A DNA stretch of 64,000 nt. It comes from Anthoceros angustus. Its lineage: Eukaryota > Plantae > Anthocerotophyta. Numbering within the stretch: position 1 is the stretch's first letter; each line of letters begins with the position of its first letter. The stretch spans positions 682,001 through 746,000 of the forward strand of contig MU008162.1 of assembly GCA_010909165.1 (NCBI GenBank). The letters are read 5' to 3'. A model generated the notes under the pieces. It did not search any database, had not been told where the DNA came from, and saw only the letters and a program-made list of their open reading frames with translations. Below are positions 28,418 to 38,769 of the stretch, one piece after another. The translations under genes were made by a program, and so were the position numbers.

Positions 28418-31688
<3,271 letters not shown>

Positions 31689-33530: not shown

Positions 33531-33940
33531 AGAAGAAAAGAAGACGACATGACCGCGCGGTGAGGAAGAAGCGCAGGCGCGCGGTTGGGGCCTGTTGCCA
33601 TGTTTATGCATGGATAACGCGGATATTCTGTTCCCATGGAGTGACGACCCGGCCCGACCCGGCCCGGCCCAAGCCCTCGCTATTCCCGCGGCGTCATGCA
33701 CTTCAAATATGCTGTGCCTTGAGGAAGCCCGGAACCGCCACGAGCTGGATTTTGCTCCACGCATCACGTCACGACCCGAGGGGCTTGGTGTTTTGAAAGG
33801 GGCAGCAATTCTGCGACGACGTTGGGGAGTGGCAAATTTCTGGTTGCCGACCGGCATTTTTCGATCGTCGGGGGAGGGAGGCCGGGGAAAGGTATAATCC
33901 GGCAGGAGAAGCAGCTCCGATGCTGTAGGCTAGCAATGCC

Positions 33941-36073
33941 ATGGCGCCAGGGCGGCCGCAGCGGCTGGCGCGCAGCTCTGTGTCTTACAAGGACGCGCCC
34001 TCGGACGAGGACGAGGTGGCCAGGGAGCTCCCGCAGGCCGTGGAGCAGGCCCGGCCTAAGCGTAGCCTGAGCCTGAAGCGGTCTTCCAGAGCTCAGGTGA
34101 GGAGATTCTGGGAAACGGTTTTTGGGTTTTTGTGGGTTTTGGGAGAGATAATTGGAGGCCTGGTCTTGACTGTGGCTTGTTGCCTATGTGCTGCTCGGTG
34201 TCTGTGTCTGGCAGGAGCGGGCTAATGCTAAGGTCTTACATTCCGCTGCCTCTCCGTGCTTTGCCTAGTTTCTGAGACATGAGATGAAATGAGGCAACTT
34301 GGTATCTCTGACCTAGGGGGATTCTGGTGGTTGAAGGAGGTTTCTTCTCTTGCAGTCATACAGAGTGTCTGCATGTTGTGTGGAGGTTCTGGAGTTGACG
34401 TCCAGTGGCTTTTCGTTGCAGGACCGTGCTGAAGCGAAGCAACTGGAGAGGGCCATCTCCGAGTCCTTGAACTCTGCTTTTGTGCACACCTACAGTCGGG
34501 GAGGGGATAAGGGCTCTCGTGTCAAATTCCGAGAATGTGATCTTGAGGCCAGGGAAGCTGGCCAGATTCTCCAGAGGTTGCATCAAACTCCGGAGGATGT
34601 TGCTTTTCAGGCTCCACTCGATGCATTTTCGGTGGAGAACAGTTCCTCAGGGGCGTGTGGGCAGGCAGCCAAGGAAGTGCTCGCTCCCCAGGTGTGCGAG
34701 GTATGCACAATTTGCTGTGCTCTGAAGCAGTCATTTCTCGCGGAAGGGATGCGACACTGAAGTGCATCATCTGCCCTGACAGGAGCAAGAGGATCAACCT
34801 CAGGCTCCAGTCGCTGCAGAGGAGCTTCCTGTGCGTCAAGCATCTCCAGATCTCGAGATTGGGGACGAGGGTGGTCACCCTCAAGACCAGTTGAATTCTG
34901 TCGACTCGGGTGACCAAAGAAGGGAGAGCTGTGAGGATGAAGAGGATGAGGACGTAGCAGCTTCCAGCGAGGATGACCAGGCAACGAGAAAATTTACTGC
35001 TGATGTCAAGGCTAGTGTTCTCACATCCCTGGTGTGGTAAAAATGTACCTTCGTCCAATCATCCAGCTGACATGGGATGTCCTGCAGGGCCCAGGCAGGG
35101 AAACGAATGCACGGAGACGGAAAGATGACGACGAATGGTCGGCTGATGAGGAAAGTGAAAGCGAGGAAGACGAGGACGATGTATTTGCGCAGGACTCGGA
35201 TGATTCTGATATCGGCAAGGGTGGAGCTAAGAAGAAAAGGACGGCACATCCGGCGTCCAACAGATCCGACGTGATCAAACGAGCTCGCTCTAATAGGGTA
35301 AAGTGGGTGAATGATGTCTATCCCAGGTTCAAGTTTCTCTGAGCTTGCCTTTTCTTACCTCCAACTTGCAGGCAGCGCCGATGAAGCCAATGTGTACAAA
35401 AGAAGCCTCTCCCAAGGTGCCGAAGATGCCAATGTCGGACACCAGGACAAGGCCAGCAGCCAAAGTGACTGAACCTTCAAGTCCTGTCCAGGGGAATGTA
35501 AACCTCCAAACCTTCCAAGCAACCGAGCACCTTGAATTTCATGGTTTCCTTTTCTCTAACCAAGTGCTCGTTCTATTCAAGCAGGTAAATGCTGCTGCGA
35601 AGGTCACTTTTGTGAAAGCTGGGAACCAAAAGGGTACAACAACTTCAGGTAAGAGATCTCGACAGCAACAGCCCAGAGTTCATGCCATCGTGCAGTTTTT
35701 GGGCGAAACCTTTTTGTTCCCTTTGTATCCATGGTAAAGGAGTTGTCGCTTCTTCAGGTTTGCAACCTGCAAGGCTGCCCCTGAAGCCTCTAAACCACAT
35801 TTCAACACCCTCCAAGACAAGCGCTCTAGCGGCAGCATCAGGTGATATCTCCTCCCCTCCTCCTTTGCCTTCTCCCGTGGATTTGTAGGTGTTTTTTCAG
35901 CCAACAGGAACAGCAGAAGCACCATTGGGTTCGGATGTGTGATATTGATCTGCTTTCCACACACAGGCACTGGTCCCCCCTTGCAGTTTCCGAATGCACC
36001 ACATCGGCGAGTGCTAGGCTTGTCAAAGCGGTACCAGCCTCCGCCCCTGCACCCCTATTTGCAGGGAACGTAG
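33941..36073 (+). CDS. Low-complexity acidic/basic protein of about 400 aa, laid out like RAD51AP1/NUCKS, ending in a GLSK...PLHP motif
   Basis: Eight phase-consistent exons: 33941-34096, 34422-34700, 34783-35010, 35088-35297, 35372-35497, 35585-35648, 35758-35841, and 35889 or 35968 to 36073. C-terminus HRRVLGLSKRYQPPPLHPYLQGT*. Support for the gene model is good; the family assignment is tentative. Confidence 0.65.
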
Positions 36074-36252
36074 TTGACTGGTGTGTCATCAAGATAAACT
36101 GGGTGGCTCTGCTCTCGATGCCTTGGTTGACGGAAGGAGCTAGATTACCTAGATTAACATCGCAAGATGGTCTGCAAAGAACTTGCTTTCCTCCTGCTGT
36201 CCTTCCCGACAGACAAGCTGCATTGTTTTTATAATGTTATCGCAGCCCAGCA

Positions 36253-38493
36253 CTATAAGATGGATGCCAAGTTGCGCTTCAAGCCAGCGCTGAAAGTTTC
36301 TTGATCAGGGCAAGACCATGACATGGCCCTCCTTAACTCTCTCAACTTGGCATACACCAAATCTTTCTGCTTGTGGTTTCTGTCCTGGACTACAAAGACA
36401 TGCACCTGGCCCCCCAGTTCAACCCAGCTCTTCCCTGGCTGTTTCCACGCACCTGCCTTCGCTCTCATTTCGTCGATCTTCCTGGCCTCCTTCCACAAGT
36501 CAGCCTCAGCATAGATGTTGGACATAACTATATAGGAAGTGCTGTGTTTGGGTTCTAGCGTGACAGCAGAATCGAACGCCTTTCTTCCTAGTTGCACGTT
36601 CCTGAACTTTCGGCAGGCACCCAGCAGACACAACCATATGGCCAGGTTGGGCTGGATAGGCATCCTCGACAAAATGTCCTGCACCTCATCAAAGCGTCCC
36701 GCACGAGCAAGCATATCAAGCAGGCTAGCATAATGCTGAATAGTTGCGGCGATCCCATATTCCCCTGTCATGCAATCGAAGTACTTGAGGCCATCGTCCA
36801 CCAAGCCAGCATGACCGCAGGCAGTAAGTATGGATACAAATGTGACTCCATTGGGATTGATGCCGGCCTGTTGCATTTCTTTCAACAGATTCAAGGTCAT
36901 CCTATGCTCCCCCTGACGAGCATACCCTGCAATCAATGCACTCCATTGCAGCACATCCTGCCTAGGCAGACTATCAAAGACAATCCGAGCAGAATCCATG
37001 CACCCACATTTTCCAAATGCATGGACGAGAGAGGTAGATACTGCATTCAGATCCATTCCGATGTTTAATACATCATGATAGACCTGAGTGCACATATTCA
37101 GAGCCCCTATATTGCTGCATGCTTTGAGAAGAGAGATAAAAGTGGCAGACGTTGGCATCACACCAGCTTCCCGCATTTGAGCATACAGTTGCATCGCCTC
37201 CTCACCATGTTCTTGTTGAGCATATCCAGCCATCATTGCATTCCAACAAACAACATCCCGTTCACATAACTTGTGGAAGATCTGCTTTGCATCCACCATG
37301 CTCCCACACTTTGCATACATATCAACAAGGGCTGTTCCGACAAACACATCTGACTCGCACCCTTTGCTTAAAACATCACCATGAATGGCATGACCCATCT
37401 TGAGGGCTTGCACTTTTAGCAGTTGTCCCTTGACAAACACAGACTCTTCCCCTGCTGCAAGGCTGCCACAAGCTTTCAATACGCTGACAAATGTCCAAGT
37501 ATTTGGCTTCACGTCGTCTCCTTTCATTTGGTGGTAAAGTTGCAAAGCCGCCTCACCTTGTTCTTGCTGCGCATATCCACCAATCAATGCACTCCAAGAC
37601 ACTACATTGCGGTGGTGCAGGTCGTTGAAAACTCGTTGCGCATCAAGCATGCTTCCACATTTGGCATATGTATCAACCAACGTGGTTCCCAGAAATACAT
37701 CTGCTCCAAAACCCCCTCTCACAATATCAGCATGGATTTCCTTGACCTTTCTCAGAGAGTTCAGCTTCATCTGTTGTCCATCACAAGTTCCAGCCTCTTC
37801 TGCAGCCGACAGGCTTCCACAAGCTTTCAAAGCACTGATGAAAGCCCGATCATCTAGTCTCACACCCTCCCTTTGCATCTGCTCAAAAAGCTGCAAAGCT
37901 TTCGCCCCCTGCCCTTGCTGTGCATAGCCAGAAATCATGGCACTCCATACGACCACATTCCGCTGGGGAACCCTGTCAAACACTTGCTGGGCATCTACCA
38001 TGCTCCCACATTTGGCATACATGTCAACCAGAGCAGTTGCCACGAACAGCTGCAGCTCACACTGGTCCTGAACCACTCTGACATGAACCCTCTTGCCCTC
38101 CTGCAGATCTACCAGGCCGCTACAGGCTCGAAGTACACTCACATATGTGTACTTGTCCGGATTGACACCCTCTGCCACCATCTGGTGGTAGCGTTTCAAA
38201 GCCTCTCCATTCTGCCCATTTTTGACAAGCCCTGAGATACTGGATGTCCATGTGAAAGTACTGCGTTGTGGCACCCTGTCAAACACCTTGAGGGCACCCG
38301 GCAGACCTCCACAGCCCACAAACACGCTGACGATGGAATTACCCACATAGCTGCTGGACTCTAGCCCAGCCTCAACAATATGGGCATGAACTCTCCATCC
38401 TTCATCCAGGGCCTTCATCCTTGAGCATCCTTGCAGCAGATACCCGTAAGTCCCAGCAGGAAGCACCACAGCCCGCTGGCTCAGGAGGTGCAT
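36253..38493 (-). CDS. PLS-class pentatricopeptide repeat protein with E/E+ extension and no DYW domain (organellar RNA-editing factor type), intronless
   Basis: Repeated LVDMYAKCGSM.DA..VF...RNVVSW motifs, HYASLLDMLARAG, and E+ KQPGKSWVEL..HVFVVQDRNH. The ORF ends without HSE/CxDC/DYW. Confidence 0.92.
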   Translation of the reverse strand: MHLLSQRAVVLPAGTYGYLLQGCSRMKALDEGWRVHAHIVEAGLESSSYVGNSIVSVFVGCGGLPGALKVFDRVPQRSTFTWTSSISGLVKNGQNGEALKRYHQMVAEGVNPDKYTYVSVLRACSGLVDLQEGKRVHVRVVQDQCELQLFVATALVDMYAKCGSMVDAQQVFDRVPQRNVVVWSAMISGYAQQGQGAKALQLFEQMQREGVRLDDRAFISALKACGSLSAAEEAGTCDGQQMKLNSLRKVKEIHADIVRGGFGADVFLGTTLVDTYAKCGSMLDAQRVFNDLHHRNVVSWSALIGGYAQQEQGEAALQLYHQMKGDDVKPNTWTFVSVLKACGSLAAGEESVFVKGQLLKVQALKMGHAIHGDVLSKGCESDVFVGTALVDMYAKCGSMVDAKQIFHKLCERDVVCWNAMMAGYAQQEHGEEAMQLYAQMREAGVMPTSATFISLLKACSNIGALNMCTQVYHDVLNIGMDLNAVSTSLVHAFGKCGCMDSARIVFDSLPRQDVLQWSALIAGYARQGEHRMTLNLLKEMQQAGINPNGVTFVSILTACGHAGLVDDGLKYFDCMTGEYGIAATIQHYASLLDMLARAGRFDEVQDILSRMPIQPNLAIWLCLLGACRKFRNVQLGRKAFDSAVTLEPKHSTSYIVMSNIYAEADLWKEARKIDEMRAKAGAWKQPGKSWVELGGQVHVFVVQDRNHKQKDLVYAKLRELRRAMSWSCPDQETFSAGLKRNLASIL

Positions 38494-38769
38494 CACATCA
38501 ACCGCCTCCTGAGACACAAACTCTTCGACGTTCCAAAGCCAGGATTCTTGCCCGCGCTGCAGGATCCACTGGGCACCACGGCCAGCTCCAGTCAATCATC
38601 CCATCAACATTCAGTCCTTAATTCATTGTTCTTCCCATTCCGGGTTCACTCTGTTCCTTCACATTCTGGTTTCACTATGCTCTTCACATTCATATATATG
38701 AAAGGCGGTCGGTCGGTCAGTGTGGGGAGGCTTTTCCCATCCTGACTGTGAACACAGAGCTCGGGTGCG

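Follow-up and report, generated by a model that had tools for sequence, protein, structure and literature searches.

The 64,000-nucleotide stretch of Anthoceros angustus DNA studied here (contig MU008162.1, positions 682,001 to 746,000; hereafter the window) belongs to the nuclear genome of a land plant, and its forward strand carries an eight-exon gene whose predicted product ends in a peptide resembling the RAD51-binding tail of human RAD51AP1. An earlier, sequence-only reading had proposed this gene as a plant counterpart of RAD51AP1, an interpretation that the present results support in part. The coding sequence comprises 1254 nt, i.e., 417 codons followed by TAG, and the exon phases proved consistent when the splice sites were checked (Table 1). 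RNA evidence was drawn from two runs, X2, from the same organism as the window (organism A), and X19, from a related organism (organism B); all X2 pieces are 100% identical to the window, while organism B is overall approximately 92% identical to it. Spliced X2 contigs contain all seven splice joints at the drawn positions, bearing out the eight exons in consistent phase proposed earlier, and X19 contigs contain five of the seven, with introns 3, 4, 6 and 7 exact and the donor of intron 2 located 9 nt upstream. Moreover, carry-over of DNA in X2 is low, as X2 depth is absent from the middle bins of intron 1 (34155-34336). Six of the introns are of the GT-AG type; intron 3 alone is GC-AG, an assignment made because no other near-canonical cut of the observed joint preserves the frame. 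RNA from both organisms confirms the final intron (35842-35966) as well as the reading frame of exon 8, on which the earlier proposal had been said to depend. Altogether, the RNA evidence establishes the gene as genuine and expressed, with its splicing as drawn.

Table 1. Features of the eight-exon gene and of its two nearest described neighbors; positions are those of the window.
Feature	Position	Strand	Description and evidence
5' untranslated region (UTR), minimum extent	33755-33940	+	X2 RNA contig spans 33755-34081 with zero differences
Exon 1	33941-34096	+	52 codons from ATG, MAPGRPQRLARSSVSYKDAPSDEDE..., then basic patch RPKRSLSLKRSSR; joint 34096/34422 in X2
N-terminal motif R-P-x-R...V-S-Y-K-D...S-D-E-D-E, residues 5-25	33953-34015	+	Read in exon 1 translation
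Exon 2	34422-34700	+	93 codons; joints in X2
UIM-like helix AEAKQLERAISESLN, core L-x-x-A-phi-x-x-S (LERAISES)	34428-34472	+	UIM_2 match and AlphaFold2 helix
Exon 3	34783-35010	+	76 codons, acidic, net charge -18; joints in X2 and X19
Intron 3, GC-AG	35011-35087	+	Joint 35008>35086 with 3 shiftable letters, in X2 and X19
Exon 4	35088-35297	+	70 codons; acidic tract 35124-35210, then basic KGGAKKKR (35217-35240) and KRARSNR
Exon 5	35372-35497	+	42 codons; Pro/Lys/Ser-rich linker
Exon 6	35585-35648	+	21 codons and 1 nt; holds KVTFVKAG, including an FxxA
Exon 7	35758-35841	+	84 nt, phase 1 to phase 1, LQPARLPLKPLNHISTPSKTSALAAAS
Exon 8, short last exon	35967-36073	+	(G)TGPPLQFPNAPHRRVLGLSKRYQPPPLHPYLQGT then TAG; 35 codons; joint 35841/35967 in X2 and X19
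L-G-L-S-K, putative counterpart of human Site-M (L334 G335 L336 S337 R338)	36014-36028	+	Sequence compared with PMC12704761 and PMC1636435
P-L-H-P, putative counterpart of human Site-C (L345 H346 P347)	36044-36055	+	Sequence comparison with human data
Putative subtilase	28418-31220	-	Read from open reading frame translations
PLS-class PPR protein with E motif	36253-38595	-	Intronless open reading frame of 780 codons

Several further observations concern the transcript itself. The 5' UTR holds a minimal upstream open reading frame, ATG CTG TAG, at 33920. A further ATG, out of frame and five bases 5' of the main one, occurs at 33936 and opens an overlapping frame of 44 codons that ends at 34070. 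Intron 5 (35498-35584) is 87 nt long, in frame and free of stops, and is crossed by unspliced contigs in X2 and X19; its retention would add 29 residues with the frame kept. Intron 4 is likewise crossed by an unspliced X2 contig, and the contigs over introns 4 and 5 may be mere precursors. In organism B, the upstream donor of intron 2 (34691) makes the protein three codons shorter, and X19 shows an additional joint that leads into the central part of intron 1 (34093-34215) and is followed by unlike sequence, pointing to a first intron of different structure or to an additional exon in that organism. Finally, a DNA contig from a further run, X1, differs from the window (33700-36400) mostly by single-base deletions, with 23 gaps in 2.7 kb; these differences look like sequencing error in that run and not real variation.

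The commonest residues of the encoded protein are Ala, Ser, Glu, Pro, Arg and Asp, and it is predicted to be disordered because its mean hydropathy, summed over the exons (0.389), falls below the Uversky boundary (0.421). The disordered protein of about 400 aa expected from the sequence-only reading agrees with this prediction, its exact length being 417 aa, and the motifs quoted in that reading are present in the exon translations in the stated order, which from the N- to the C-terminus is R-P-x-R..V-S-Y-K-D..S-D-E-D-E, a UIM-like helix, an acidic tract, a basic patch, a Pro/Lys/Ser linker and the tail. Of the organism-B differences listed, just L9Q falls within the N-terminal motif. Human RAD51AP1 probably shares with the plant protein an R-P-x-R..V-x-Y..S-D-acidic motif in its N-terminal part and a UIM-like helix of the form L-x-x-A-phi-x-x-S; NUCKS1, in turn, presumably has a basic V-x-Y motif in its N-terminal part, with acidic runs of Ser/Asp after it, again like the plant protein. 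The N-terminal motif and the acidic-basic tract of the plant protein may thus resemble those of human RAD51AP1 and NUCKS1, a likeness put forward as a lead.

Pfam scans were carried out on each exon separately, against 24,736 models. Exon 2 gave a single match, UIM_2, at 12.1 bits for a cutoff of 21 (E 0.25), and its single-sequence AlphaFold2 model, with a predicted local distance difference test (pLDDT) score of 43.6, contains a low-confidence helix over exon-2 residues 2-24, which covers the UIM-like stretch; the UIM-like helix named earlier accounts for the sole, sub-threshold match of this exon. For exon 1, the single match was Shugoshin_C (PF07557), at 13.1 against 23.3 bits (E 0.084), where plant residues 4-17, GRPQRLARSSVSYK, correspond to positions 1-14 of the 24-position profile. 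This motif is C-terminal in Shugoshin and N-terminal in the plant protein, the plant protein lacks the Shugoshin coiled coil, and the match is sub-threshold. No Pfam match was returned for exons 3 to 7. The FVKA in exon 6 was considered as a BRC-like FxxA and set aside as uninformative, approximately one such motif being expected in a protein of this size.

Comparison of the two organisms shows that differences between X19 and the window amount to approximately 4-11% in most exons of the gene. The divergence of exons 1 to 3 and of exon 5 is comparable to that of intron 5 (7-11%), and the best conserved are exon 4 (3.8%) and, above all, exon 7, with 1 difference in 91 nt (approximately 1%). Exon 7 matched no known motif or family; located just upstream of the tail, it may represent an unrecognized functional element.

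The C-terminal tail reads H-R-R-V-L-G-L-S-K-R-Y-Q-P-P-P-L-H-P-Y-L-Q-G-T, with RRVLGLSKRYQPPPLHPY occupying 36005-36058; the stop codon lies at 36071-36073. The protein consequently ends in PPPLHPYLQGT, four residues after the tyrosine at which the sequence-only reading had placed its terminus. Exon 8 has a single Pfam match, RAD51_interact (PF15696), at 13.3 bits and E 0.1, which corresponds to approximately 4e-6 for this model alone, the gathering cutoff being 25; the alignment covers positions 13-39 of the 39-position profile and ends three residues short of the stop.

The corresponding human peptide has been characterized in detail. Kovalenko et al. (2006, PMC1636435) showed that the last 25 residues of RAD51AP1 suffice to bind RAD51, that the substitutions R316A, L319Q, L328A and H329A lower RAD51 binding, with L319Q abolishing it, that R321A, L322S and K326A leave it unaffected, and that L336, L345 and H346 are needed for RAD51 binding in yeast two-hybrid assays. 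In a 2025 cryo-electron microscopy (cryoEM) structure at 3.0 Å (PMC12704761), the residues L334, L336, L345 and H346 are buried on RAD51: L334 and L336, which belong to Site-M (332-LRLGLSR-338), lie in a hydrophobic pocket, L345 and H346, which belong to Site-C, occupy a shallow groove, and R333 pairs with D50 of RAD51. Upstream of the C-terminal motif, RAD51AP1 also has a Site-N, WVPP, an instance of the DMC1/RAD51 P-motif [WF]xPP (PMC12704761). The cryoEM study is numbered on isoform 1 (352 aa), in which R333 is the R316 of isoform 2 (335 aa). In both RAD51AP1 and RAD51AP2, the whole motif is encoded by one short last exon (PMC1636435). RAD51AP1 has, in addition, been described with two DNA-binding regions.

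Set against these data, the plant tail is identical to human RAD51AP1 at L334, G335, L336, S337, L345, H346 and P347, with the same spacing. In both proteins the Site-C Leu lies nine residues past that of Site-M, and five residues follow the final Pro, the first figure being derived from residue numbers in the papers and the human five-residue tail from P330 in the 335-residue isoform. R338, which is dispensable in the human protein, is conservatively replaced by Lys, and the plant tail differs at L339 and K343, two positions tolerant of substitution in the human protein. As in the human gene, the motif lies whole on a short last exon, behind a joint confirmed by RNA. Both proteins are of similar size (335/352 aa in human, 417 aa in the plant), are disordered, by prediction in the plant, and contain acidic and basic tracts. 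However, the exon-wise scans revealed no significant profile or pairwise similarity between them, the acidic third exon and the linker of the plant protein have no alignable human counterpart, and UAF1-binding SUMO-interacting motifs were not identified in the plant protein.

Other proteins known to carry the motif, or to lack it, are also informative. RAD51AP2 has its C-terminal RAD51-interacting motif on a short last exon, in common with the plant protein, and beyond this motif bears no similarity to it; it is a meiosis-specific protein of 1159 residues, otherwise dissimilar to RAD51AP1, and human RAD54 bears a weaker version of the motif (PMC1636435). As RAD51AP2 and RAD54 both carry it, the docking peptide can occur in otherwise unrelated proteins. 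NUCKS1 represents the reverse case: it is a paralogue of RAD51AP1 in which the C-terminal RAD51-binding domain is absent in all vertebrates (PMC4787752), whereas the plant protein appears to carry such a motif. In general build, NUCKS1 is probably similar to the plant protein, with acidic tracts followed by Lys-rich DNA-binding patches, in part after the description in PMC4787752.

Searches for relatives returned little. Exon 2 gave no match in a word search and no credible relative in an exhaustive phmmer search of 1.84 billion protein representatives, in which the matches to two bacterial repeat proteins were dismissed as spurious after inspection of the sequences; in hindsight, exon 2 belongs to the type of sequence that is least well conserved. 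A word search with a stop-free piece of 75 aa that includes exon 8 yielded no candidate with three words in common, the ESM Atlas gave no usable match for exons 8 and 1, and phmmer searches of the PDB with exons 8, 1 and 4 gave nothing relevant, a blank that is uninformative for exon 8, as the true human match there is estimated at E ~600. In a metagenome scan with a stop-free piece of 49 aa, none of the 599 pattern matches was confirmed; a DNA pattern for the motif was discarded for metagenomes, as it holds approximately 30 bits and in the order of 1000 random matches would be expected, a figure calibrated on that scan. The scope of these blanks is limited by the collections searched: the best database relatives of the neighboring PPR protein are at most 46% identical to it, and the exact products of the PPR and F-box genes of the window are absent from the protein collection, which indicates that this genome and its close relatives are not represented there. 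Blank searches consequently say little about other plants.

How far, then, does the tail speak for a RAD51AP1-like protein? The database searches could not tell kinship of the tail from chance resemblance. That the protein binds RAD51 through its tail, in the manner of RAD51AP1, is a proposal we judge to be evenly balanced on the comparison of sequences; true common descent with the animal RAD51AP1 family, which forms part of that estimate, is put forward tentatively. A number of results weigh against such a relationship. RAD51_interact, the profile that the sequence-only reading had named for a check, is the sole Pfam family found on the last exon, but every Pfam match of the protein is sub-threshold, this one reaching 13.3 of the 25 bits, and it is lost once 41 intron-coded residues precede exon 8; in a scan of the whole protein it would probably go undetected. 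The tail keeps L334, L336, L345 and H346 at the human spacing, but R333, whose mutation weakened binding in the human protein, is replaced by Val (with Arg-Arg directly upstream), and a [WF]xPP Site-N is absent from exons 5 to 8, the nearest sequence being QFPNAP. Furthermore, no search of any kind returned a relative that would take the motif beyond two closely related species. These points would be accommodated if the gene encoded a lineage-specific disordered nuclear or chromatin protein unrelated to RAD51, with the tail a chance match to a short linear motif, a possibility we take seriously while holding it short of an even chance. It is favored by profile matches that are all sub-threshold and fragile, by an exon 2 with no relative among 1.84 billion representatives, by the divergence of most exons between organisms A and B at about the level of introns (7-11%), as expected of fast-evolving disordered sequence, by the missing R333 and WVPP, and by the fact that the likeness was picked by a reader who knew many motifs. 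By our own estimate, moreover, approximately 0.1 chance C-terminal matches of such a score to PF15696 are expected per plant proteome (~30,000 C-termini). What speaks against chance is that seven identities at buried or mutation-sensitive positions, the spacing, the five-residue tail and the exon layout are jointly unlikely, and that the differences fall at positions tolerant of mutation in the human protein. The pattern LGLS[KR]x5PLHP has a chance of approximately 3e-11 per position, i.e., approximately 3e-4 exact matches expected per proteome of 1e7 residues, and a single instance of it was present when the window was translated in six frames; the ~3e-11 figure is optimistic, as the pattern was defined after the match had been seen.

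It is also conceivable that a functional RAD51-docking tail arose independently in plants, on a scaffold unrelated to RAD51AP1/NUCKS1. RAD51AP2, which shares just the short motif with RAD51AP1, and the weaker version in human RAD54 speak for such an origin, and no similarity is detectable beyond short motifs; nevertheless, the order of the motifs in the plant protein probably parallels that of RAD51AP1, which would be a strange coincidence if the scaffold were unrelated. We regard independent origin as unlikely. Returning to common descent, the corresponding proposal that land plants, or at least hornworts, own a true recombinase cofactor of the RAD51AP1/NUCKS1 family with a working Site-M/Site-C tail is one that we consider possible but somewhat doubtful.

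Should the tail bind as proposed, a coherent mechanism can be outlined, for which we infer binding to RAD51 and to DNA, involvement in recombination, and a common origin with animal RAD51AP1/NUCKS1. The product would be an intrinsically disordered nuclear protein working like RAD51AP1, whose extreme C-terminal peptide, encoded whole on the short last exon, would dock on RAD51 and possibly on DMC1. The leucines of L-G-L would be seated in the groove separating the N-terminal domain of the recombinase from the ATPase core, and the Leu-His pair in a shallow groove on the ATPase core. The Lys/Arg patches that follow the acidic tract may bind DNA or nucleosomes and, together with docking of the tail, could stabilize the recombinase filament and aid strand invasion. 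In addition, further contacts, with ubiquitin or chromatin, may come from the UIM-like helix and from the basic V-x-Y motif at the N-terminus.

Regarding the surroundings of the gene, the adjacent PPR gene converges on it, its stop lying 180 nt past that of the eight-exon gene. An X2 contig spans exons 7 and 8 and continues beyond 36400 into the PPR gene, and therefore the 3' ends of the two genes probably overlap. Farther neighbors in the window comprise a NAC factor, an F-box protein, a kinase and an ARM-repeat protein. The transcript start lies between two WTTSSCSS sites of the E2F type (33682-33689 and 33883-33890), for approximately 0.15 expected in that span at the window's own density, and window-wide such sites are fewer than in shuffled sequence. 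With a window-wide count below chance, the promoter sites were taken as at most a hint of cell-cycle regulation and not as evidence of it. No SOG1-type CTT(N7)AAG site was found in the promoter of the gene.

Full-text searches of the literature yielded no paper on a plant RAD51AP1 counterpart, and none citing PF15696 or the PANTHER entry for the RAD51AP1/NUCKS1 family, PTHR15361; RAD51AP1 has been called vertebrate-specific (PMC3401455). If the tail does not bind, the gene encodes an expressed, fast-evolving disordered protein. If it does bind plant RAD51 or DMC1, the protein would represent a new, so far unstudied accessory factor for plant recombination, and the origin of the family, or of the docking peptide, would be pushed much deeper; under true common descent, the family would be older than the plant-animal split and not vertebrate-specific. 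Such a factor would also offer a way into gene targeting and into meiotic recombination in a bryophyte lineage that can be transformed.

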